Below are positions 3,506-61,088 of a DNA stretch of 64,000 nucleotides, piece after piece (the first letter of the stretch is position 1; the number at the start of each line of letters is the position of its first letter). The notes under the pieces were generated by a model. The model did not search any database. It worked only from the letters and a program-made list of their open reading frames with translations, and was not told the origin of the DNA. Made by a program: the position numbers and the translations under genes. This stretch comes from Oikopleura dioica (lineage: Eukaryota > Animalia > Chordata), in NCBI GenBank assembly GCA_907165135.1, contig OU015567.1, forward strand, positions 1,302,001 through 1,366,000, in the 5' to 3' direction.

Positions 3506-4516
3506 GCGTGTTAGATTAACCTTGTTGTTCTTGATTCAATAAATCCTGTATCTTCTTCTTTAATTCCTAGTTTCCGGACTTATGAGATACATGTTGTATA
3601 TGACTGCTCACAAAATGATTTGCGACTGTGAACAGATGTTTGTTTATTGTCCGCATCTCAAATAAAGTCTGACAAATTTGCTCAATTGAAACAAGATTAT
3701 TATGTTTGGCTTTAGATTTGACACGGTAGTCAAGCTCAAAATCTTGTGCAATTTCTACAAATTGTGGAATTATGACACGACCGCTTCATTGTTTTCTTCA
3801 TTGTGCTTCATATCGTGAAAAAGACGGTATTCTTATGTATCAGCATGGGTATAGGGCGGCTACGTTCCAAATAGTTAAAATTGTAACGGCGTTACAAAAA
3901 TTCAAAACCAAATTGAACCAGTGTGCACTTCGCTTCTGAATTGAAGGAAACTATTTTTTGGTTTACCTTTTTGCTTATTCTGTCAAAAATAATAAGAAAA
4001 ACCGAATAGAAAATAATTTTATGACAAGAAAATCTGAATGTTAAAAAATTCTAACAGCCAAAATTATGAATGACTCATGTTAAATGAGTTTTAATAATAT
4101 TTATTCAAATGCTCAAAAAACAAATTCAAATAAAGAAGCAAATTCAACCGAATATAATTGCGAAGATTTTTTTCTTTTTTGTCATTTTGCTGTTGAGTTA
4201 TCCACAAAGATTAAAGCCACAAATAATGAAAATATGCGCATTAAATAATTTATAACCGGAGCAAAATCTAATTATAAAAGCTATTGGCAGGTAAGCCATG
4301 AGTTTCTGTCTAAAAATGTACCATTAGCTTCTTCATTCAGCATTTGTCTGTTTATCCAGAGAAAGTTGTACTAAAAACGACGATGCCATTGAAAGAAGAA
4401 ACGAGAAAAATGCTCCTGATTATTTTTCTTGCTATTTCTTTTGTTGGATGGATCATTGGATTTTTAAGGGGGCAGAGATCTTGAAACCGATTTGAGATAA
4501 AATCAAAGACGATAAT

Positions 4517-4893
4517 TTAAGGGGGTGGGTCGACGAGAATCGGGATTTTCGGAACAAAATTCCGTAGAAACCTGATTGGCTGGAAAAATTTTGACTTTTC
4601 TGGTGAAAATAAAAGGGTTGAAAAAATCTATCGGCGAAAAGAAGAAAAAATTTTGACCAGAAAAAATGGTCGAAAACTAGTCTCAAAGTGGACCCCAAAT
4701 TGCCATTTTTGCAATTTTCTGATTTTTTCGTAATTTTTTTTCGGACACTTTTGGTAAAGAAGTGAACAAAATTTCTGCCAAACTCTTTGCCGACAGATTC
4801 TTAATACCCTTCTTTTTCCAACCGAAAAGTCACAATCGGGGTTCTCGGGAAATTTGTTCTAAAAATTCTTATTTTCGTCGACCTCCCCCTTAA
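4517..4893. mobile_element. TTAA MITE, GGGGG..GTCGACGA family
   Basis: ttaagggggtgggtcgacgag ... ttcgtcgacctcccccttaa; related copy at 12391-13057. Confidence 0.75.
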
Positions 4894-5566
4894 GGGTACT
4901 ATCTTCGATTTCCAGAAGGTGACCTTTCAAAAGATTTATAAGAATCGGTTATTAGAGATGGGTTCTTCATAAAATTTCATGATTATACCTTCTTGATAAC
5001 TATTCGAATTTATCAATATATCTTGAGATATGGCCACTAGAAATTTTTTCGAAAAAAAATTTTGAACTTCGATTTTCTTGATCAAGGGCTTGTTCGAAAG
5101 CTCAGAGAAAGAGCAGTATGTTAGTAGCTGTATCGATCGCTACATCAAGATATTTTCGATTCTAGAGCCAAAAATATGTCGCAAAATTTTAAAAAATGCT
5201 CAATTTTCGAAAAATCTGCGAGACAGAATCTTCAAAAAATTATTTTTGGTATTTTGAGTTTTTCAATGAAAAATTCCTTCTGTAATTTTAAAGATTAAGC
5301 TTCAAATTATATATAAAAAATATAATAAGGCCAAGTTTTCAGACTTGTTTTTGAGTTATTCAACCTTTTATATAGGCCATTTTTGCGAAGATGTCCACTT
5401 CATGCCAAAATTTAGCCGCTTTTCGGTCAAGCAATTCATAAACCCCTCTGTAATAGTTAAGATCTAGGACAGGTCTATTATATGAGCCCATATGGACTCA
5501 GCAATCATTTACAAGTTCCGAGTTATTCAAGGCTCATGTTGGGGAAATCGAAGATAGTACCCTTAA
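4890..5566. mobile_element. TTAA MITE inserted in the TSD of the previous element
   Basis: Perfect 20-bp TIR GGGTACTATCTTCGATTTCC, TTAA both sides, shares TTAA 4890-4893. Confidence 0.85.
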
Positions 5567-5934: not shown

Positions 5935-7465
5935 ATGGCAGAAGGAAAATCTTACGCCTAGGGTTCAACTCGATCAAAAATTAAAAAAAATCAGTTTTGA
6001 TGAAAAATAATAGAAAAAAAAAATTGAATCCGAAAAAAGATTCGGCCGAGTTCCAAAAATTCTTGGACGAGCAACAATACTCGCGAAATGGAATTCTCCG
6101 TTACGAAAAAATCTTTGGCGACGATTTTGTCTCAACAGGCGGGATTTCTACGACGCGCGAATTCGTCAAGATGCTGAATTTGAAGGAGGGCCAGAAGGTG
6201 CTCGATGTTGGTTGCGGAATCGGAGGCAGCGCCTTTCACATGGACATGGAATATGGAGCGCATGTTGAAGGTGACAACTTTTTGGAAAAATTTTATTAAA
6301 TGGAATTCAGGCTTTGATTTGTCCCGAAATATGATTGACATCGCCAACGAGCGCGCCACAAAATACAACTTGGAAAACGTCTCCTTCTCTGTCAAAGATG
6401 CTACTTTAGTCGAATTCCCTGACGATACTTTTGATGTGATTTACTCCCGAGACACAATTCTTCATATTGCTGACAAACTTTCTCTTTTCAAAAACTTTCT
6501 CAAATGGCTGAAACCTGGCGGAACATTGATGATCTCCGACTATTGCTGCACTCCGAATAAATGGAGCCCGAATTACAGGTGAACTATTTTACTTATTTTT
6601 ACAGTCGTTGTTGTTGTCAATTTTTATTCAGAAAAAAAACTTTACTCCGCACCTACAGGGATATTTTGAGTTAAGGACCCCCCCCCCCGTCAGCTTTTTC
6701 CTCCGAAAAATTTAAATTTTTAAAAACTTTTCGGTTCTTTATGTACCCTCAAGTTAAACTTGCTTCAAAAACTTGATAGGACGAATATTTGACCAAGAAA
6801 AATGAATGTTTTTGCCAAAATTAGGGCAAACTCGTCAATTTTCGGCGAAATTCCCAATTTTCAAATGCGATTTTAAGGGTGAAGGAGTCGAGATAGACCC
6901 CCAAAAAATGTAGCCCTAAAATCGTTTTTTGACCCGTAGAATCTATTTCCGGGGTCAAAATTTTAAAATTCCGAAATTTGATTTTTCAAAAAAAGCTGAC
7001 GGGGGTCCTTAACTTGTGATTTCAGTTTATATCAAAAACATTTTTCTAGTTATAGTCGATTTTTGATAATAACACTTTCAAGCTTAAATTAAATGCAAAA
7101 AAATTCGTGAAAGAATATCTGAACTAAATTTGGATTTTAGGGCGTATGTCGAGCAGCGAGGCTACAATCTTCTGACAGTAAAAGAATACGGTAAAACCAT
7201 TGGACGAGCAGGATTTGTCGACGTCCGCGATATTGACTACACTTCCGGCTTCATCGACATCCTCAAAGGAGAACTCGAAACTTTCGCCAAAACGAAAGAT
7301 GACTTCATCAAGGTACTCTTCCTTGATTTCATTATTGCTAAAGCCGCTTAGGAATTTAGTGAAAAGGAGTACGATGCGATCAATGGCGGATGGAGCGATA
7401 AAGTGATCAGATGCACGAACGGGGATCAAAAATGGGGATTTTTTATCGCTAGAAAACGCGCATAA
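5935..7465 (+). CDS. PMT: Phosphoethanolamine N-methyltransferase, single SAM domain (MT2/PfPMT-like)
   Basis: [74 protein letters not shown]; about five exons. Confidence 0.92.
6671..7012. mobile_element. TTAA MITE in PMT intron
   Basis: TIR GGACCCCC(n)GTCAGCTTTTT, TTAA both ends. Confidence 0.8.
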
Positions 7466-18563: not shown

Positions 18564-20594
18564 TCAGGCTTGAGGATTCCGAACCGACAAAGAGCCACGG
18601 TTCGCCTTGTAGCCTTCTGTTGTTCCACCCTCTAAATGAACCACCTGTTTAGCCTTGTCAAGAAGTTTTTGACACATGTTATTGATTTTGGACTGGTCAA
18701 TCTGACTCCACACGAGATTTATGACTTCTCGCGCGTGCTCTAACGAGTCAAAATACAACTTCTTATTTCTCCCAAGCTCTTCACGAACTTTTGATTTCAA
18801 ATGTGCCCAAAGGCTGAAATCGAGGGGATTAAGGTCGGGGCTATGGGGTGGCCACTCATGCATTCTCTTCTCCCGATGTGCCTGTCCCTGTATTTCTCCG
18901 CACGCGACGCCGGTGATGCACCGATCTAACGAGAAATGGGCATCGAGGAACTCCAGACTACTTGCGGAAGTATGCGAGCGAGCTCCGTCTTGTACGTAGA
19001 CGCGACCGACGAGCTCGCTGGTTCCATCCTCACGGATATGTATGTGTCCATGGGCCGCGAGGTCCTCGTACCAAGGCTCGAGACAGATCTTCTGGTACCC
19101 AAGACTATTCTCTTTAATAGACTTGAGTTTCCCATTTGCTTGCTCCTCAACAAAAACGCGTAATGAAAGCTTTATATTGTGTCCGATACAACAAGCGATC
19201 ATTATTTTTGCGTTAAACTTTTTGCTGAAGCTCAGCAAATGTTGAGGAGGAGCCTCGTTGTCTTTTACCCACCAGCCGAGATTTCGGCCAAATTTCTCTT
19301 CACGCATCGAAATTGAGCATTCATCCGTATGCAACAACTGTTGCAGGAAATCGGGTGTTCTCTCTACCTCTTCCAGCAGCCATTTGCAGAAGGCCAGCCG
19401 CTTCTGCTTCGCTTCTTTCGAGAGTTCGGGCTTGGCTTTTCCAAAACGCTCAAATGAGTAGCCATCTTTCGCAAGAAGCCTGAATACTCGCGAATAGTTG
19501 CTCCAGCCTGGCATTCCGAGTTCGGCTAGTGCTTTCCTCAGATTATTACTCTGAGCGTAATGGGTTGGAGCCTGTTCGCGCATTTTGTCAACAACAAGCT
19601 GAACTTGCTGTTTCTCCTCATCGGTAAGAGGCTTATCATCTGGAATAGGTTCTTTTGGTCGAATAAAATTTGAAATAGCAAAAGGATTTTTTCTTATCCA
19701 TTGCTTTTCCTGATTTTTGTCAAGGGAAAATGCTTTATAGCCGTTGTTCATTGCATCGACCAAGAGAGTGTACCTTTCGATGAATAAGCCTAATATAGCC
19801 GCGTTGAACTTTTTCTCGAATGTCACCGGTCCCAGAACAAAGTACTGGCTGAGATTTGTGCATAAGATTTGGAGATAGATGTACCCAAGATCACTGGATG
19901 CAAACTGTTTCCATGTTCGTGGAGATCTGATTACTGGAAGCTCCTCGATTCGATCGACATTGATCAGCTTCACCTTATCCCGTACTGATTTTGTAATGTG
20001 TATAGGGAATCGGAAATTGAAGCTTTCCATGATTAAATCGAGGAGCCCTGCGAATTCTTCATCGTGGAGAAGATTCTCGTGGCCTACTACTACCGTTCCT
20101 CGCGGAATGAGTGGCCGATCGAGCTGATCGATCGCTTCATTCTGAGTGGCTTGTGGTTGTGATTGTAAGGCACTTTTTGCAAGCCGAACCATGCTATCTG
20201 GAGGTGTCTGTGGCGAGAGGCCGGGAACTAATTCAAGATCATAATGATCTTGATTCAGTTGGATTGTTGAGGTGGCTGGTATGGGGGTCGAGGTTGGGAC
20301 TTTTGCTGGAGCAGTGCTCGTCTTCTGCTTTTTAGGGGGAGAATGATCTTCGTCATAGCATGTCTCCTGTGAGTGCTTTTCGACAGCTTTCCCATTAGGG
20401 AAATCTTTTGAAAAAGATTTCTGAATGAATCGGGTTTGTTTGGCCTTAGGGGAAAAAATACTGTATGTTATTTTATAACCCATGTCCTGCTGTAGGTCGA
20501 TAATCTTCTTGAATGCTGTCTCTGCTTCTTTTAAGAGTTGAGCGATCATTCGGTGCTTTTGGACTCGGTTGAAAGAACTGCACATTCGTGACAT
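18564..20594 (-). CDS. 676-aa DDD transposase with a long N-terminal extension
   Basis: HTH region (..RVFRLLAKDGY..KPELSKEAKQKRLAFCKW), LHTDE, YVQDGARSH, WPPHSPDLNPLDFSLW. Confidence 0.95.
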   Translation of the reverse strand: MSRMCSSFNRVQKHRMIAQLLKEAETAFKKIIDLQQDMGYKITYSIFSPKAKQTRFIQKSFSKDFPNGKAVEKHSQETCYDEDHSPPKKQKTSTAPAKVPTSTPIPATSTIQLNQDHYDLELVPGLSPQTPPDSMVRLAKSALQSQPQATQNEAIDQLDRPLIPRGTVVVGHENLLHDEEFAGLLDLIMESFNFRFPIHITKSVRDKVKLINVDRIEELPVIRSPRTWKQFASSDLGYIYLQILCTNLSQYFVLGPVTFEKKFNAAILGLFIERYTLLVDAMNNGYKAFSLDKNQEKQWIRKNPFAISNFIRPKEPIPDDKPLTDEEKQQVQLVVDKMREQAPTHYAQSNNLRKALAELGMPGWSNYSRVFRLLAKDGYSFERFGKAKPELSKEAKQKRLAFCKWLLEEVERTPDFLQQLLHTDECSISMREEKFGRNLGWWVKDNEAPPQHLLSFSKKFNAKIMIACCIGHNIKLSLRVFVEEQANGKLKSIKENSLGYQKICLEPWYEDLAAHGHIHIREDGTSELVGRVYVQDGARSHTSASSLEFLDAHFSLDRCITGVACGEIQGQAHREKRMHEWPPHSPDLNPLDFSLWAHLKSKVREELGRNKKLYFDSLEHAREVINLVWSQIDQSKINNMCQKLLDKAKQVVHLEGGTTEGYKANRGSLSVRNPQA

Positions 20595-23696: not shown

Positions 23697-24067
23697 AATC
23701 AAGTTTGAAAGGTGTAAGAGTGGAGAAAGGGCGACGGAATAATAGTTATTTCTCTTTGTTTAACTTATAACTAGGGATTCTATCGGAAAATCAAAGTTTA
23801 ATATTTTTCCTTGAAATTTTGGGTTTTAGACCAGTTTTTGGCGCTCATTGCGAATTCGCCAATTAAAAAATGATTGGAGCGGCGCTTGGTGGTGTTGGCG
23901 TGGAGCGCGCGCGCCTTAGGTGCGCTTGGAGTAAATCATAAAAATCAATGCTTTTCTCAGAAATTTCATATCTGTGGGTAATTTAACATGGAGATTAATA
24001 ATTTATTATTCATTTTATCTGTTTGACCAGTTTTTGGCAGTGAATAATGGAAAGCTGTAATGAACAT

Positions 24068-27000
24068 TTAATCAAGCCTTCTTTTCGAAAGACGAGTCGA
24101 GCGAACTGGAGTTTTTGAAACCTCGATTTTTGGCTTCTTTGCTCTTTTTTCTTCTTTGATTTTCTGACGTTCGATTTTGATCTTCTTTATTTCGTCCCTT
24201 TTCTTTAGAATTTCCTCCCTTTTCTTGCGAAATCGTTCTTTCAGCGTCTTTCGAACCTCCAGAGTAGTTTTGACTTCGTTCGAGTTGTCGATTCTATCCA
24301 AAAGCTCGTCCCGCTGTTTCTTTTTCATTCTCCTCAGGTAGTTGCCCAGCTTGTTAACTTGAACAACAGTTTGGTCGGCAATGTTTGCGAGCGCGGAACC
24401 AGTGCTCGTTTGTTCCTTGTACTTCAGGGTGGCAAAGACACTCTCGCAAAAGCGATTAGACGTCTCATATTTACCAGAAAGTCGAAGTGATTTCATCTGG
24501 TTGTAATCTTTCTGCAACTTTTTCTTTGCTTCTGTAAGGCACTGTCGAATCGTCTCATTCAGGTCGTCCCGAAGTTTAGCATCCCTTGGCATCTCTTTGA
24601 ATTCTCGAAGTTTCCTAAAGATAAAATTGAATCTTTACAAACTGATAAATTGGGGTACCCAAAAATTTATTTTTTTTTATAATTGATTAATTGGGATACC
24701 CAAAAATTAGTTTTTTTTATAAATTGATTAATTGGGGTACCCAAATATTATTTTTTTATAAATTGATTAATTGGGGTACCCAATAAATTGATCTTTAAAA
24801 TAATGGGATACCCAAAATTGTTTAATAAAAAAAACTTACAGGAAATATTCTGAGTCTTCGTAATTTTCCAGAACTCCATCAAAAAGATCGTCGTAAGGCT
24901 GTTTGGATTCGAGAATTTTCTCCAAAGCATCGAGGCAGGATTTCATTTGAATGCGGACATCTTCGATCGTGCCTTCTTCATTCTCTGATGCCCTGAGAAT
25001 AAGACCTGAGTACGAAGCCCAAATCAGAGGTGTCAGAGATGTGCTCAGAATAGCTAGTTGTTTATCTTGGAGGAGTGGGAGAAGTTCCTTTGCTCGTTTG
25101 CGGTCGGAGTATTTGCTGATGGTCTTGACAGTTGCCTCCCAGTAAAGCAAAAGGCCCTCGGCATTCTTCTTGGAAGAGCCGATTCGTGAACCCATGTCGG
25201 TGCAGTAGGCTTTCTTTGTAGATTTGTCGCCAAGTTCTACACGCACTTCGTCGAGCCTGAAAAAGAATTAATTGGGGTACCCAAAAAAGAATTTGAAAAA
25301 TTGATTGGGTTACCCAATTGGGCTACCCAAAAATGAAAACTTACTCATTCTTGAGATCTTCGCGATGATGGCCGCTGATTTTGCTTGAGCCAAAAAAGAA
25401 TTTTCAAGCAAGTGAAAATATCATTCGCTAAAGCAGAAAGTCCTTGCCGGCCGTATCGATCGATGTTCCCAGCCGTATGCAGAGCACACCAGATCCACTG
25501 CACTGGAATCTCGGAGTTCCTCTTCTTGTCGATGAATTCAATTATCTGCATGTTTGCAGCTTCTTGCGCACGGCAGGTGTCTGTGAGAATTGAGTCGGTT
25601 TTCTTCCAGATCTCATCAGAAAATGACAGTGTGTCGATAGAAAGAGTGACGGCTGTGAAGATTTCTTCAGCTGTTCCACCGAAAAGCTCAACGATCATGA
25701 ACAGCAGCTTTTCCCTTTCTTCGTTGATGAATACGACGTTCATGCATTGACGATTTGATTTTGAGGTTGTCTGAAAAAAGTATTTATTGGGGTACCCAAA
25801 TATTACAATTAAAAAAAATTATTGGGCTCCCCATAATTGGGGTACCCAAAATTTCAAAGAATAACTTACCCCGTCAGTAGCGAGTGTCAGGCGCTCGGCG
25901 TTCTTAACAAATTCTTCAAGCTGCACGAAAGTTGCTAGGAGAAGGTTTGGACGCAATTTGTAGAGGGTTGATTTGGCGACAGGTCGTCGAGTTTCGCCTT
26001 CAACTGGTTTCGAAAAGATTCTGTGCTCTTTGAATTTGTTCGTGCTGTTGAAATGAACCGAAGGAACGGACTGCGATGCAAGCTCGATCAAATGATTGAA
26101 ACGAGTCGTTGGTGGAAGTCTCGGGTTGTTTTTTCCTCTTCCAGAGACCGGTGTTGATTTTGATTTCACCAAATAGTAGTCTCTGTCTTTTCTAAAGTCG
26201 TCATCATCAATTTCTTCGCTGTAGTCGATCGTTTGTCGCTTTCTTTTCTTTCCAACAGCTGAGCATGAGGCGACATTTTCTTGTGAAGGCGTTTCTAAAG
26301 AAAAATTCAGTAAAAATAATCCGTTATTATTGGGGTCCCCAATTTGGGGACCCCAAAAAAAAACTTTTAAATGATTCGATATTATTGGGGTACCCAATTT
26401 GGGGACCCCAAAAAAAAACTATAAAATGATCCGATATTATTGGGGTACCCAATTTGGGAGCCCCAAAAAAAACTTTTAAATGATTCGATATTATTGGGGT
26501 ACCCAATTTGGGGACCCCAAAAAAAACTATAAAATGATCCGATATTATTGGGGTACCCAATTTGGGAGCCCCAAAAATACAATTGTCATGATTCTTTTTA
26601 ATTTTCTTTATTCTTACCTGTGAAATTCAGAATTGTTTCAGCCATCATTTCAGACGAATCTGGAGTTGGAATCGTTTGAGGATTCTCAAGAATCTGATCT
26701 GGCAACATTCCCTTCACTAAAAGCTTTGTTAGATTTTTTGGGATACCCAAAAATTTCTTTTATAAAAACAAGAGGCACCTTATTCAGGTGCCTTTTTATC
26801 TTGCTCGACTATTTAATTAATTCACTTGCCTGGCGATGTCTGAACTGCGCAATCATTAAGCAACATCGGGAGCTCTTCGTCTGAATCCAGGCCTTCTTCT
26901 GCCAGACATTCAAGACCGACTGTAGGATTCTCCTCGTCGAACCTTGTTTCTCCCTTTCGAAAAAGTCTCTCGGATTTGTGATGGAATGTCTGCATTTTCG

Positions 27001-27456
27001 GCTTTCTGGAAAAAAAAAGAGAGTAATCCAATTTCACTTTTTCTCGAAATCTTCTGAGGATTTTGCATGACTTCGTACCATAGGTACGATTCTCTTTGCA
27101 TTTGTTTATCTCTGCTTGACTTGCGATTTCATTCTCAACAAGTTTTTTTTCGACATCAACGAGTGTCAAAATCATTATTTACTTGATATGAATGAGATTT
27201 ATCCCGGAAATCCCTTTGTTTTTGCATCGAACCACTTGGTTTTGTCACCTTCTGCAGAAAGGTTCGAACCTAACATGGGGCGCAATGTCAACAGAGTTCG
27301 AGTGCATGGAAAGGCACTAGTTCCGGGCGCGCTCGTCGCGCGATTCCCTGCCGCGCCGTCACTTCCAGTCAAAAAACGGACAATTTCGCGAGGTTCTTGT
27401 TGCAGCATAGCCCCAAGATTTCGACAGATGCTTGAGAGATATCTGTTTCTGGACAT
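24068..27456 (-). CDS. Multi-exon DDE/CxxH transposase, one apparent frameshift, 5' exons unresolved
   Basis: LTLATDG (D1), ILTDTC (D2), WCALH (CxxH), TSNRFCESVFATLK (E); introns 24615-24839, 25257-25344, 25771-25869, 26295-26617, 26717-26829 (GC-AG). Confidence 0.8.
26326..26575. repeat. Intronic minisatellite, ~54-55-bp unit, about 4.5 copies
   Basis: Unit ttattggggtacccaatttgggg(a)ccccaaaaaaaac...; alternating variants cttttaaatgattcg / ctataaaatgatccg. Confidence 0.9.
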
Positions 27457-28164
27457 ATCAAAGAATTAGAGATTTCTAAGCTTATTTGCTACTTCAAAAG
27501 TAAGAGAAACTCATTTCTTGGCTCCGCGCCCCTCGTAATGCACTACTGCGGCGCCACCTTCACTCAGTTACAAGCAATTTCTGAAGGCTGTTCTTATTGC
27601 ATAGTCTTAAAATTTTTACAGATTCTGGCAAAAGGTCAATATTTTGACATATCAAAAAATCAGGAGTTTTGAAGCTTATTTGAGCACATAAAAAAGTACT
27701 TTTCTCCGCGTTTTGATGATTTCTATCGTTAAACGGCGAAAAAATACTTTTGAGAGTTAATTATGAATGAGAGTCATATTTTTAGTTATTTTATGATGTT
27801 TTTGACTGAAATTATGTCGAAAATAACAAAATAGCATCGGACAAGTTTGGGTGCGAAGGGCCGCGCCGCGCGCCGTTTTCCCGATAGAATCCCTACTTAT
27901 AACTTTTTTGGCATAAGGAATCCGAATCCGATGTCAATATTCGATAATTCGTAATTCTTACATTTTTTAATGTTAGATTTTTCGAGCAATAATATAAAAT
28001 GGGGAAGGAGGTTGTCTTTATGTTTAGACCATATCCTATTGTCTATAATAGGAAAAATTTTTATTTTTGATTCAAGGGCCGTTAAAAGATGGAAAAAATG
28101 ATAAATTATAATATCATAATTTATGATTGCCAAAATTGACCTCTCATGAATCGATGATAGAAAT

Positions 28165-40065: not shown

Positions 40066-43000
40066 ATGAAGAAAATATGGAAGATCATACTTGCAGTTTT
40101 CAGTTTACTTGTAAAAGACAGTAGAGAAGAGAATCCGACGGAATCAGAGATTTGGCTGAATGAAGAGACGAACAAGCCTGTAGGAACTTCGGTTAACATT
40201 TCAGATATACTTTGATGTTGACGATTTTTAAAACCCTGTAGTGAATTTTAACTTCAACGGTCAAATGAGCCGAAAAATCTAAAATTTTGGCTTTTCAAAA
40301 ATCCTTTTCATTGATTGGCAAACAGGTCGTATACATGTTTTTGATTGGCTTAAAAATTTTTGAAGAAATTTTTATTCGAAAAATAGGAATTTAATTTAAT
40401 TAACCATAATTTTTAATTAAATTAATAATTTTTTTAAGTCTAACCCTAACCCTAACCCTAACTCAAACCCTAGGAAAAAATAAAGACTCAGTTAATTTTT
40501 CAACGATTTTTTTTTTATTTTTTTTTTAAAGAAACAAAAAAAAAAAGAAAATCAAAAATAAAAACAAAACAGATCCTCGCGCGAAAAAAATTTGAATGTA
40601 ACCTGCGAAAGGGTTTATTTGCACGTGGGAAGATGGCTGGTGCGACGGGTGGTATAATGTGGACCACACGAAAGAAGAAAATTATGTCCCGAACAAATTC
40701 TTTGACTTGGTTGTCAGACAAGGCAAGTACACCGCTCCCGTTTTGATTTTTGCGTAAAAATTTTCGAATTTTTCGAAGATGAGAAAAAAAATATTGAGCA
40801 ACGCCCGAGTCCCTGTTCAAGCAAGTTCAATAAAAAAAAGGATGAAAATGGAAATTTCACGCATCTTCATTCGCGGCGTTTTTTGAGTCATTTTTGCGAT
40901 AAAAAATATATAGATACAGAAAAGACGATAAAAAAATAAACTCACACCTTTATTTTTTAAAAATAATTTATTTATTTAAAAAATAAAAGATAAAGGCGTT
41001 GATTTATTCGCCATTTAATTTCTCTTTATATAATCTATAAGAAAAAAATTGTTTAGCCAATAATCCGCCGCTTTTTCAACTTCCTTTTTTGTGGAATAGT
41101 AAAATTATTTGTAAATTTTCTGTATTTTGAAAATGCGATTCAGGTGCGTCATCAAGCCCCGCAACTGGGCCCGCATTTGACAGGACGCGCAAAACGGAGG
41201 AAGGCCATTATCTGCTGCTCGAGGCCTCGCAGAAAATGTTTCTTTCTCAAGCCGAAATCGCTTCTCCCGCCTTCGATATCACTGCTTATGACGAGTATTG
41301 CCAAGGGTTCCAAACAAACTGAATTTTAGGGATTTTCGTTGTTTAAATTTCTGACAAATTAAATTTGTTGTTGACAAGGGCGGTTTCGCTAGAATTGACA
41401 GAACAAGCCGCTTTTTCAAGCTGAACACAAATTTCCAAGCAAATTTTCAAAAAAACACTTATTACCGAAGTTGTCTTTGCTAAGCGCGGTCAATCAGTTT
41501 AGATTTGAACCCTCTTAAAAGCTTCTCAATGTGGTACCTGATGTACGGCAAGCACGCTTACAGCTTGACAGCTTTCGTCTCGATTCCCGTCCCAGGCGCC
41601 TATCGAAAGCTCCTTTTCAAAAAAAGTGGCCAAGCGTCAAAAACCGCCACTCACTGGATTTATCAAGCTGTTACGATTAAGAAGCCAGATCTTGAGCCGG
41701 GCCATTTGGTCAATATTACAATCAACGCTGTAAGAGGTGAGCTCTTTCAATTTTTTTTTTATTTTTTTTTTTCGAAAATGATAGAATCTGCAGTAAATAA
41801 AAACTTCAAAACAAATCGAGAATTTGCTCAGCTGTGAATTTTCTGTCACATTTTGGGCATCGATTTTTCGTTTCGAGGACTTTTAATAGACAGGATTTTC
41901 CAAACTGATGTCCACAAATAACAATGCAAGATTGCCAGTGTTCATTTTTATCGTAAAGCTCAAGGCAAATTTCGCAAGTTGGAATGAGCTCGTTTCTATC
42001 TGTTCTTTTCTTCAGAGAATTCCTGATTCGATCATTAATCGAGTTTTTTGTCTGCTCGATTTGAAGTTGAAGGGACTTCTTTTTTTCTTGTTCTGAAGTT
42101 TTTCGCGCTCTGAGCTGGACTTTATTTCTCAACAAGACGGCCATGTTGTTTTCTTTGATGTTAAATGATCGAAATAATTGACGTCTCTTTTTGATTGCCG
42201 CATTTTTACTCGAGGAAATTTTGATAAGATCTTCATAGTAATTTATCATGGCATCAAGGGTTGAAATAGTAACATCGATTTCGCTTATTTTCGATCGTAG
42301 CTCAGAACATTCGCTTTCTATTTCGTCTTTGATATTTTGAACACGACTTCTTCTCGATTCAATATCATCCTTTATTCTTGAAAATTCAGATTGCTTAAAA
42401 ATTAAGAGTTTTATTTTACTTTTGAATTTCTTCTTCTTTTATTCTCTCGAGTATCTGTGTAATTTCGCTTTCAGAAAGCATTATCTATTTTTTGAGAGAG
42501 AAAGTGACACCATAGTTAGATCTTAATATTTGCAGGTCTGAGTTACCAATCTGACATCGGCATGGATGACATCATGGTTCGCCCGGGCCCCTGCCCAGAT
42601 CTACCTCCCAAAGACGCCACTCCTCCTCCTCCGCAAACAACAGCATCAACAAAAGCCGTCAAATCAACCATGGCAACAACCAGAGCGGTCGTCAGTACAA
42701 TGGATCCGATGGTGACTAGGGAGTTCAATCCATTTTTCACCACAAAAATCGAAAGCTGCCAAATTTCAACAGTCCTGGGGGACAAAACCGAGCAATACAT
42801 TTCGAATATGTTTATTTGTTGTGGAAATAAAATCATGTCAAGGAAAGCGGTTTTCAAAAAATTCGAAAAAATAATTTAAAAAATGAAAAATTTCCGAAAA
42901 ATTTGAAAAAGATGATTTCCAAGAAAACCCTTAAAAAAGACTGAACGGTTCAAAATGCTGCGCCGGGGTGCAATATTTTGCGCGAAAACAAGATTGCTGC

Positions 43001-47474: not shown

Positions 47475-48281
47475 ATGGCGACTCCGATTGCAGAGGAAAT
47501 TCAAAGGTTGAAGGCAAATGGACCGACTTGTTTGTTGAAAAGTTTGAAGAGTCAGAAAACTGCGGCGTTGAGGAAAAGAGAGAAGGTTAGTCTCATAATA
47601 ATTTCTAACAAAAAAACGCTCAATTTTCCCTAACCCTAACCCTAACTCAACCCTAACCGCTTATCGCTTCGAGCTAAATCAAGCCGCTCGAAGCGCGGCT
47701 CTTATATCAATTTTCGAAGCCGCAAGCGGCTTCTCAAATTTGATTCATTTCTACACCGAAATTTGAGCCTAGATAATTCTATTCTTCTTCAGGCGAAAGA
47801 AAACTTCCCGAAGAAATTTTCTGAAGAAGAACTTCGAAAACGCTTATCTGTTGTTGAATATGCCGTTACTCAGGTACTTCTTGCTCCTCTCGTATTTTCT
47901 TAAATCGGGTTTGAAGCTAGGTGGAACGGATACGAGCGGATCAGGAAGATATTTGAACGAAACAAGAGACGGAACTTATCATTGTGTTGTTTGTTCAAAG
48001 AAATTATTTGAATCAAGTGCAAAATTTAAGCATTGCGGCTGGCCAAGTTTTGACAGGTACAAAATCACTCGGTTCAAAGCGATTGAGAATATTCTAGAGC
48101 TCTCGAAGAAAGCATAAAAGAAACCATCGAGCGAGCGCAACACGGCGTAAAGCTCACGGAAACCAGCTGCTCAGATTGCGGCGCCCATTTGGGGCACAAG
48201 TTCAACGATGGCCCAACGGAAACAAAGCTAAGATACTGTATTAATGGCTCTGCTCTTGAATTCCGCCCTAAAACTGAATAA
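47475..48281 (+). CDS. MSRB: Methionine-R-sulfoxide reductase B (Cys type)
   Basis: [34 protein letters not shown]. Confidence 0.92.
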
Positions 48282-59248: not shown

Positions 59249-61088
59249 TTATACAGTCAGATCACTGTCTCGTGAGCTCTCCTCGTTCATGACAGTGATG
59301 TTTGTCTCGTTCATGCTGGCAGGTTGTGTAGGCGTGATTGTAACTTGTTGGGTATGAATTTCTTTGTTGGCGATTTGATCAGGCTCTGTTTGATCGTGAT
59401 TTGGCTGCTCTTGCGCGCCATCTACTGAGCCGTCTTCAGTTGAACTCTCAGAAGACGCGGTGACATTTGGCTGGAGGACCAAGGAATTATCGTCGACACT
59501 CGGAAGATTGTCGCAAAGACGAGATTCGTCTTCAATCTCTGGTACGGATGTCCACTGAAAATTGTAAAAATGCCGAAAGAAAAGTTCGACAACGCACCTC
59601 TGAAAGCGATGTTTGTTGATCCCACTGCTGTGGAAGGTAAATTGCGCCTTGGAAGTCTGATGGTTTCGTAAAGTCTCCAAAGCTGTAGGGTTGCTGTACA
59701 TCTCCTGTTCGCACCTTTATTTTCAAGTTACCAATGACCGTCGCCAAGATTCTCTTACCTCTGAAGATGAAGAAGGAGAATTTTCTCTGGAAGGACTTTC
59801 ATTGCACCGAAGCTTGTACATTGTCTTGAAGAAATGATGTCTGACTCTTGCTGAATTGAACGATCTTCTTCCGCTTGGATTACCACATCGTCCGACTAGA
59901 TGAAAAAGTCTTGTCCAATATTCTCGAAGACACTCAATTTTACCTTGGCAAGGACATGGAAATCCATCACGATCAACCTGGCATGGAATTCCTCCATTCG
60001 AGCATTCGCATGTCGCTGGGTGGCAAACATCGATGCATGAGCAGCCGCAGACCTCTCTTGATGATCTGAGCACTCGGTTGTTTAAGCGATCGCTGCTGTC
60101 AACATCGTCAACGTTCTTTTTCAAGATTTTTCGACGCTTTTTCGGGGCAATAGGTTGCAGGAACCACCATTCATCGACGCCAGTAAGATCCTCTGAAAAA
60201 GCAACCAATCAAAACTGATCGCACTCAAAAAACATACCTTCTGGCGCATCCGAGTCAGAATCATTTTCACTGCTATGATCCGATGTTATCGCTTGGCCAC
60301 TTTCAGTCTGCGCGGCAATTTTCCTCTGCTTAGCGCGCCACTGACGCAGCTTTTTACGACGCTTTGAATTCAGACGCTCCCGATGAAGAGGAATAGGAAA
60401 ACTGACTGCTTCGTGGTGCTCTTCGTCCATCCCAAGAGCACATCCGCCCGTCGATGGAAGGGTGCAAAAAGACTGAATAAAGCATGAAAACGATTTAACA
60501 GTTATATCTGAAAACCTGTTTGCGCTGAAATAAAAACTCCCTGACGGAAGAAAATCTAAGTGGCCTCTTCCTCTTCATTCCGTCTTTTCGTAAAATTCCC
60601 TTTTCGGGTGAGGGAGGGAGGGCCGTTGCAGCTTTTGAACAACATGGTTCTTCTTCGATTTCTTTTTCTTCAGATGTTCTTGAGGAGCCTTGACCGGGAT
60701 CGCTAGAACCAGAATGGCAGCCAGAATCATTCAAAGTTTGCTCGGCGTCGATTTTTTCTACGACGGGAGATGAATCGCTCGATGGGAGAGTTTCTGTCGG
60801 TGCAGATTGATCGGATGATTGAGAATCGGAGATCAATTGATCATTTCTAGAAAAAAAATTGTTAGATGGCGAAGACCCTAACCCCAACCCTAGCCCAAAC
60901 CCTAGCCCTAACCCTAACCCTCCTCAAAAAAAAAAAAATTGAAAGATGCTAAAGCAAATGGTGAATTTATTTTTTGGTAAGAAATTTCAACCCTTACTTG
61001 GTTTCTTTTTCTTCTTTGATGCATTCTAGTTCCACTGGATTTTCCGCTGCTGCTTCCATTCTTTATTTTGCAAGATCTGCTCTCCCAT
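59249..61088 (-). CDS. CSRNP: Cysteine/serine-rich nuclear protein
   Basis: GILRK..LRF..V..F.RKQ, GGCALGM, FLQP..PKKRRKIL, SREVCGCSC..C.P.TCECS..GIPCQVDR..FPC. Confidence 0.92.
60877..60921 (+). repeat. Interstitial telomere-like (CCCTAA)n; also at 38201, 40441, 47629
   Basis: Three to seven degenerate hexamers per site, all CCCTAA on the plus strand. Confidence 0.75.

Follow-up and report, generated by a model that had tools for sequence, protein, structure and literature searches.

Introduction

How do introns at unrelated positions of a single gene come to share one short palindrome? The question is raised by a 64,000-nt stretch of Oikopleura dioica DNA (assembly GCA_907165135.1, contig OU015567.1, positions 1,302,001 to 1,366,000; here called the window), which contains a whole hAT-like DNA transposon. 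The transposase gene of this element lies on the minus strand, and all five of its introns carry the palindrome TTGGG-N3-CCCAA, mostly in the form TTGGGGTACCCAA. A first-pass annotation of the window had offered three accounts: intronic binding sites or an enhancer for the transposase, an element that controls splicing, and descent of the introns from one another by propagation. Propagation is the best supported of the three. Introns 3 and 4 of the gene are collinear and an intron gain is found in a second transposase gene, although the sites of introns 3 to 5 prove to be older than the sequence they now carry. We propose that a short, hairpin-forming repeat module with the palindrome as its core resides in introns of O. 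dioica hAT-type transposase genes, is copied between introns and multiplies in place. We give this reading a probability of about 0.55.

The origin of new spliceosomal introns is a long-standing question, and clean, datable cases of one intron arising from another are rare. The palindrome tags a small set of related introns that includes both entry into older introns and at least one new intron. Transposons are multi-copy, and their copies act as natural time points.

Results

The palindrome is concentrated in the introns of the transposase gene

Counted on the minus (transcribed) strand as [AT]TGGG-N2-4-CCCA[AT], the palindrome occurs once in intron 1 (26717-26829), ten times in intron 2 (26295-26617), three times each in intron 3 (25771-25869) and intron 4 (25257-25344), and five times in intron 5 (24615-24839), giving 22 copies in 848 nt. 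The counts of the first-pass annotation are thereby reproduced exactly. A search for TTGGGGTACCCAA with up to two mismatches returned 32 matches in the window, where shuffled sequence predicts 0.74; all but one, at 19090, fall inside the five introns. The 5-mers TTGGG/CCCAA reach 49 per kb in introns, compared with 0.44 in exons and 1.2 in the remaining window, and GGGTACCC has ten copies in introns and none elsewhere in the window. Motif searches and 5-mer density bear out the earlier remark that the palindrome was not seen in the exons, the subterminal regions or host introns; it is missing from the rest of the window as well. Each subterminal region has a single isolated TTGGGT half-site, both on the same strand, with no enrichment and no symmetric layout.

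The layout differs from intron to intron. Intron 1 (113 nt) has its single palindrome and, at 26770-26797, a second and unrelated structure, an 8-bp hairpin with perfect pairing (AGGCACCT / AGGTGCCT) and a run of T behind it. The ten copies in intron 2 (323 nt) form five 54-nt units, each a palindrome doublet. Introns 3 (99 nt) and 4 (88 nt) both hold a doublet and a single palindrome, while the five copies in intron 5 (225 nt) are spaced 32-41 nt apart. Four of the introns have strong canonical GTAAG...AG ends; the fifth, intron 1, is GC-AG with a consensus donor.

We then turn to the whole genome, searched as the O. dioica Okinawa assembly (64.28 Mb in 19 scaffolds, the longest 17.09 Mb), which is Nanopore-based (PMC8008620); the window lies on the scaffold named chr2 in NCBI gene names. 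The exact 13-mer is present 24 times: ten times in the window element, nine in a second copy of it (the C1 copy), four in a truncated relative (C3) and once elsewhere. With 23 of 24 copies in one element family, it is not the common genome-wide micro-repeat that, according to the first-pass annotation, would have refuted the observation. Read in the direction of transcription, the exact copies of the family all have the same orientation: 10 of 10 in the window, 9 of 9 in the C1 copy and 4 of 4 in the C3 fragments. Genome-wide, the doublet TTGGGNNNCCCAA-N-TTGGGNNNCCCAA is confined to the window-element family and to one further gene, L019, with no occurrence in the control. The broad class ATTGGGNNNCCCAAW is found 106 times against 8 in the control, and some of these copies lie in other repeats. 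One example is a short dispersed repeat (L027:~1860-2020; L028:~2020-2190) with TTGGGGTCCCCAA at about its middle; single palindromes of the TTGGG-N3-CCCAA class thus occur in other repeats too.

Arrays vary between copies and introns 3 and 4 are collinear

The second copy of the element, at G000:C1:~5362991-5366612, is 97-99% identical to the window copy, and even between copies this similar the arrays have changed in place. Relative to the window, intron 5 of the C1 copy is 31 bp longer, roughly one unit, and its intron 2 is 108 bp shorter, or two units. Introns 3 and 4 of the window gene can be aligned over their whole length, with a shared doublet-spacer-single layout; the alignment scores 79, whereas shuffled sequences average 3.8 and reach 18 at most.

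More distant members of the family reach further back. The truncated C3 copies retain exons 5 and 6 only; their protein is 62-68% identical to that of the window gene, at a synonymous divergence (dS) of 2.2-2.7 and a ratio of nonsynonymous to synonymous divergence (dN/dS) of ~0.1. Their intron 5 has the same 13-mer in the same tandem layout, with diverged spacers. A 29-nt remnant of intron 4 in a C3 fragment is without the palindrome.

A second subfamily (subfamily B: L013 and L014, 32-39% identical) shares intron positions 3, 4 and 5 with the window gene and has no introns at positions 1 and 2, which are lineage-specific in this comparison. Introns 3 and 5 of subfamily B contain tandem copies of a different palindrome, GGCT...AGCC (GGCTAGTCTGAGAACAGCC, perfect as GGCTGTTCTCAGAACAGCC in L014), at L013:3030-3225 and 4105-4370 and at L014:3037-3182 and 4066-4131. 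This palindrome is found nowhere else in the genome, nor in the subterminal regions of subfamily B. At position 4 the intron is plain and 46 nt long. A metagenome scan returned a single locus, the marine relative L018, with plain introns of 77 nt at position 3 and 46 nt at position 4. Positions 3-5 are thus common to relatives, in part as plain introns; the introns there predate the palindrome arrays, and the module must also have entered existing introns. On these alignments the arrays appear as lineage-specific additions to older introns 3-5. The first-pass annotation had envisaged introns that descend from one another; subfamily B shares the positions of introns 3-5 but not the motif, and novelty of position is limited to introns 1 and 2. 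In L013, exon 3 is split by a ~0.5-kb insertion (L013:~4395-4905) with ~30-bp inverted ends (GGACAGAAGGTGTATTCCACTGCACTTAAG), apparently a miniature inverted-repeat transposable element (MITE).

The same palindrome fills introns of other transposase genes

L019 (C1:12.12 Mb) was reached by a scan with intron 2; by eye, the gene there has a BED-like finger and a hAT-like C-terminal motif. Exon-by-exon Pfam searches of L019 and of two further genes of this type, L021 and L022, returned no family above threshold. The L019 gene, whose exon borders were anchored by hand, has eight introns, and seven of them contain TTGGG-N3-CCCAA, 28 copies in all, often as the doublet of the window element. Profile comparison of window-type with L019-type catalytic exons found no similarity beyond a C-x-x-H motif.

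Two introns of L019 resemble each other from donor to acceptor: of the 110 positions at which introns 4 and 6 align, 98 are identical, with one 30-nt unit in addition. Intron 4 is precisely missing in a sister copy, L020, which is 86-88% identical, and its absence involves neither a length change nor a target duplication. It is also missing in the outgroup L021, a more distant homologue, where a single open frame runs across the junction. On these alignments L019 intron 4 is a polarized intron gain, made by copying a sibling intron. Presence/absence polarity is established for this intron only; introns 1 and 2 of the window gene are simply lineage-specific relative to subfamily B.

L021 and L022 likewise have the palindrome in introns. 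L022:2800-3960 (G000:C5:~5003800-5004960) is a third BED-finger, hAT-like gene, with one palindrome in intron 1 and five in intron 2. Across the three transposase families the TTGGG/CCCAA arms are invariant and the central triplet drifts. The exact 13-mer, with its one copy elsewhere, is largely restricted to the element family, but the TTGGG-N3-CCCAA class is not peculiar to the window gene: in this genome two or more further families of transposase genes have introns filled with it.

The surroundings of these genes are themselves repetitive. Repeats of the CGCACGCGCA type lie to either side of the L019 gene (L019:3219-3370 and 6783-6849), as they do for L021, and are probably subterminal repeats of the L019 element. 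The L022 gene is cut off by an array of GGCGAAAGCGA-type repeats at L022:3960-4250, and a 767-bp part of L022 recurs on C2 at 98% identity (L033).

The gene and its reading frame

The gene comprises six exons and five introns, with borders drawn from frame continuity and GT-AG ends (GC-AG for intron 1). Exon 1 (26830-27175, minus strand, like all exons and introns here) has its ATG at 27175 and an open frame that is 35-39% identical to exon 1 of the paralogues L013 and L014; the C1 copy is without its first 37 codons. Exons 2 (26618-26716), 3 (25870-26294), 5 (24840-25256) and 6 (24068-24614, with the stop codon at 24068-24070) are open frames that also figure in the public gene model OKI2018_I69.chr2.g4219 (protein P0002). 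Exon 3 ends in LATDG, the likely first catalytic Asp, and exon 4 (25345-25770), again an open frame, contains the second Asp and the C-x-x-H motif. The public model uses introns 2-5 and starts in exon 2, so that intron 1 is absent from it; we predict intron 1 from frame continuity, its donor AG|GCAAGT and the conservation of exon 1 in paralogues. Our own model was searched exon by exon with the exons unjoined, and the only full-length protein used was the database entry P0002.

Near its end the frame of exon 4 is shifted by an extra A at 25392 (A6 in the window, A5 in the C1 copy). The public model omits the frame-shifted stretch, and the relatives P0003 and P0006 retain the other frame. The C1 copy in turn has one T missing at 26129. 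Both single-base differences lie in homopolymers and may be errors of the Nanopore-based assembly.

The element belongs to a divergent hAT-like clade

The transposon spans 23772-27895 on the minus strand (4,124 bp), with limits set by the sharp edges of its identity to the C1 copy and by terminal inverted repeats. It is flanked by an 8-bp target-site duplication, CTTATAAC, at 23764-23771 on the left and 27896-27903 on the right; around the C1 copy the 8-mer is another one, AATATGGC, so that both insertions show the 8-bp duplication of the hAT superfamily. The left terminal inverted repeat (23772-23790) starts TAGGGATTCTATCGG and the right one (27877-27895) ends CCGATAGAATCCCTA. They lie within a 29-nt repeat pair, counted with 10-nt flanks that include the target-site duplication, in which the left member is 90% complementary to 27877-27905. 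The ends of the element, TAGGG...CCCTA, agree with the short terminal inverted repeats beginning YARNG that characterize hAT elements.

An AlphaFold2 model of P0002 (predicted local distance difference test score, pLDDT, 74.8; predicted template modelling score, pTM, 0.68) was compared with the PDB using Foldseek. The nine best matches were all chains of the Hermes transposase (E 4e-6 to 8e-5), followed by the P element, ISCth4 and RAG1; the template modelling scores are low, 0.29-0.36, as is expected for multi-domain models. The model is thus predicted to have a Hermes-like fold, the RNase H-like DDE core with an inserted all-alpha domain that is expected of hAT transposases. Pfam searches of every exon of the window gene found no hAT domain (neither the C-terminal dimerisation domain nor a BED finger), and the sole match, to MULE, was sub-threshold (E 8.6e-4). 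A sequence search of solved structures with the transposase gave no match. With a profile of exon 4, 59 of 1.84 billion representative proteins match at E <= 0.001, so the clade is very rare in public data; the matches looked up are O. dioica proteins and open reading frames from marine metagenomes. Ten of the profile matches were run against Pfam and have no domain above threshold, again with one sub-threshold MULE match. The clade is divergent, and we therefore write hAT-like rather than hAT. The label, which the first-pass annotation had already used, is a fair one in view of the duplications, the terminal sequences and the fold.

No tRNA or Rfam family scored above threshold in the element; intron 2 gave only sub-threshold matches of a generic, hairpin-like type. 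A 5' block at 27068-27494, comprising the gene start and upstream non-coding sequence, is deleted in the C1 copy (427 bp) and retained in many non-autonomous derivatives. Within it, the non-coding segment 27204-27339, just upstream of the start codon, is conserved more strongly than the exons, with 86% identity to C3 fragments, where exons are 67-70% identical. This segment is recognizable even in subfamily B, is kept by many non-autonomous derivatives and has GGTTCGAACC-like boxes; it has no tRNA or Rfam match. It may be a promoter or a region required in cis. Elsewhere in the window there are short interstitial telomere-like arrays at 40440-40472, 47628-47658 and 60875-60921, with units CTAACC, CCCTAA and ACCCTA.

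Discussion

Proposed copying between introns

In the reading we favour, copies of the module would pass from an intron to other sites within the transcript unit, keeping their orientation throughout, and would there either enter an existing intron or create a new one. The module would also multiply in place by tandem duplication, and in the window element the outcome would be its presence in all five introns. Two introns of one gene that are similar over their full length are the mark of intron propagation, and we find this twice, in window introns 3 and 4, whose spacers agree only marginally, and in L019 introns 4 and 6. The simplest explanation of the copying would be intron transposition, in which an excised intron is reverse spliced, reverse transcribed and then recombined. 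Evidence for intron transposition in Oikopleura is recorded in PMC3443670 (Table 1), and the proposal that near-identical O. dioica introns arose by reverse splicing is attributed there and in PMC4122922 to Denoeud et al. 2010. The uniform orientation of the copies is compatible with an RNA intermediate and is not proof of one. The invariant TTGGG/CCCAA arms may be kept for the module's own persistence or for the harmless splicing of enlarged introns.

Several points weigh against this reading. The introns and the RNA route are deduced from DNA sequence, and copying at the DNA level, by template switching during repair, would leave the same traces. When the spacers of introns 3 and 4 are compared alone, their similarity is only marginally above chance, with 17 of 500 shuffles reaching the observed score. 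The palindromes of intron 5 are exact in both the window copy and the C3 fragments at a dS of 2.2-2.7, while the spacers have diverged. Exact palindromes at saturated synonymous divergence, together with invariant arms, mean that copying alone is insufficient and that some constraint or biased maintenance is needed. Finally, copying offers no reason why every sighting of the module should be in a hAT-type transposase gene.

Possible splicing control and other explanations

The persistence of exact palindromes at dS > 2, among diverging spacers, also keeps alive the splicing control that the first-pass annotation had listed. Hairpins, or pairing between palindromes near the two splice sites, would here be selected to control or permit splicing of the transposase pre-mRNA. 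Such structures could draw enlarged introns together to suit a spliceosome adapted to very short ones, or they could make intron removal a regulated step, for example one restricted to the germline. All five introns do fold more stably than shuffled sequence (z-scores -2.3 to -7.0, with -7.0 for intron 2), and the placement is suggestive, the first palindrome lying 14-43 nt past the donor and the last 15-35 nt ahead of the acceptor. In subfamily B a hairpin recurs in introns 3 and 5 with a different sequence. Yet compensatory changes are not seen: degenerate copies just lose pairing, and the arms never co-vary. Relatives manage with plain introns of 46-77 nt at the same sites, and introns with ends as strong as those of the window gene should need no help. 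We therefore think selection for splicing unlikely as the main cause, while allowing it real weight.

The symmetry of the palindrome raises a different possibility, that it is a DNA site for a dimeric protein, either the element's own transposase, in autoregulation or to enhance transposition, or a factor of the host put to use by several transposons. Half-sites of 5 bp in perfect inverted repeat around a free 3-bp centre are typical of dimer sites, and the sites are arrayed, with arms that are invariant across families. The distribution is wrong for such a role, however. The palindrome is strictly intronic, missing from both subterminal regions and from the other non-coding parts of the element, and genome-wide motif scans found no copy in non-autonomous derivatives that have both ends and the 5' block (more than 10 loci). 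The lack of the motif in these derivatives argues against transposase-binding sites. Three transposase families share the palindrome, and the only pair compared by profile, window-type and L019, has no sequence similarity; a palindrome common to dissimilar transposases is not a specific site for one of them. Uniform strand orientation is also unexpected for a symmetric DNA site. The intronic binding sites or enhancer suggested at first are thus disfavoured, and we hold any protein-binding role of this kind to be improbable. A resemblance to NFI-type or Rel-type host sites was considered separately and rejected because the spacing is wrong.

Another candidate is a tiny DNA transposon, of the MITE or introner type, that has palindromic ends, integrates as DNA and persists in introns alone. 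A related larvacean, Fritillaria borealis, has documented introns of MITE origin (PMC11282704), and the broad palindrome class is in genome-wide excess, part of it in other repeats. The sole datable insertion, L019 intron 4, nevertheless has no target-site duplication, all exact copies have the same orientation, and the doublet has no copies in host introns, in intergenic DNA or in the non-coding ends of the element itself. We regard this origin as highly improbable. A further source of palindromes, the P-nucleotides of hAT excision footprints, was rejected on the ground that the arms repeat identically in arrays. Chance, low complexity or an assembly artefact can be dismissed, despite the AT-rich, repetitive nature of the introns and a Nanopore-based assembly, given the excess of matches over shuffled sequence and arrays in independent copies on three scaffolds.

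Implications

Copying between introns has a stronger form, in which the TTGGG-N3-CCCAA hairpin is the active determinant of a self-propagating lineage of spliceosomal introns in an animal, one that outlasts excision and reinserts by reverse splicing into its own transcripts and those of co-expressed hAT transposases. We advance this as a conjecture and consider it doubtful. If true, it would explain the invariant arms, the single orientation and the presence of the palindrome in several unrelated transposase families, and it would offer a sequence-defined, recently active system for the experimental study of intron gain. Should the hairpin be necessary for copying, it would be a pointer to the mechanism. 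Should it instead be a splicing-control element common to several transposon families, it would add a new mode of transposase regulation in DNA transposons. Under either reading, intronic transposase-binding sites are unlikely.

Comparison with known systems

In the Drosophila P element, splicing is controlled at one intron, intron 3, through exonic pseudo-splice sites bound by host proteins. The likeness lies in a transposase-gene intron as a possible point of regulation; here the palindrome is in every intron, and the parallel is an analogy only. hAT elements contain subterminal repeats that bind the transposase, such as the AAACGG motifs of Ac and the subterminal repeats of Hermes, and these are retained by non-autonomous derivatives. 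Our palindrome resembles them as a short motif repeated many times inside a hAT element, but it is missing from both the subterminal regions and the derivatives.

Introners and introner-like elements of Micromonas, fungi and Amoebophrya (PMC3609843, PMC7789003, PMC9860276) are related spliceosomal introns with stable predicted structure or inverted repeats, and in this they are similar. Their copies, however, run to hundreds to thousands per family, lie in host genes unrelated to one another and in many cases have direct repeats at the borders. Here a handful of transposase genes is involved, and the doublet is found in two transposase gene families only. The borders have no direct repeats or target-site duplication, L019 intron 4 and the intronless L020 giving the same spliced length. 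Closer in taxonomy are the MITE-derived introns of Fritillaria borealis (Henriet et al. 2019, as described in PMC11282704), another case of inverted repeats linked to transposable elements in the introns of a larvacean. As described there, those introns have non-canonical AG-AC or AG-AT borders, consist of entire MITE insertions and are scattered across host genes, whereas ours are GT-AG or GC-AG and the repeat is internal.

The nearest match is in the same species. The near-identical introns of O. dioica (Denoeud et al. 2010, as presented in PMC3443670 and PMC4122922) are resembling introns at different positions of one gene, with precise borders, no target duplication, kept orientation and a new intron copied from a sibling, which are also the features of L019 intron 4. 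The present case differs from that account in involving transposase genes of mobile elements, a short palindrome module, entry into existing introns, tandem multiplication and several transposase families. We found no description of a palindrome core with invariant arms, of its restriction to transposase genes or of its sharing between families. What the window contains appears to be a local case of the intron propagation already reported in O. dioica, and not a new kind of system.

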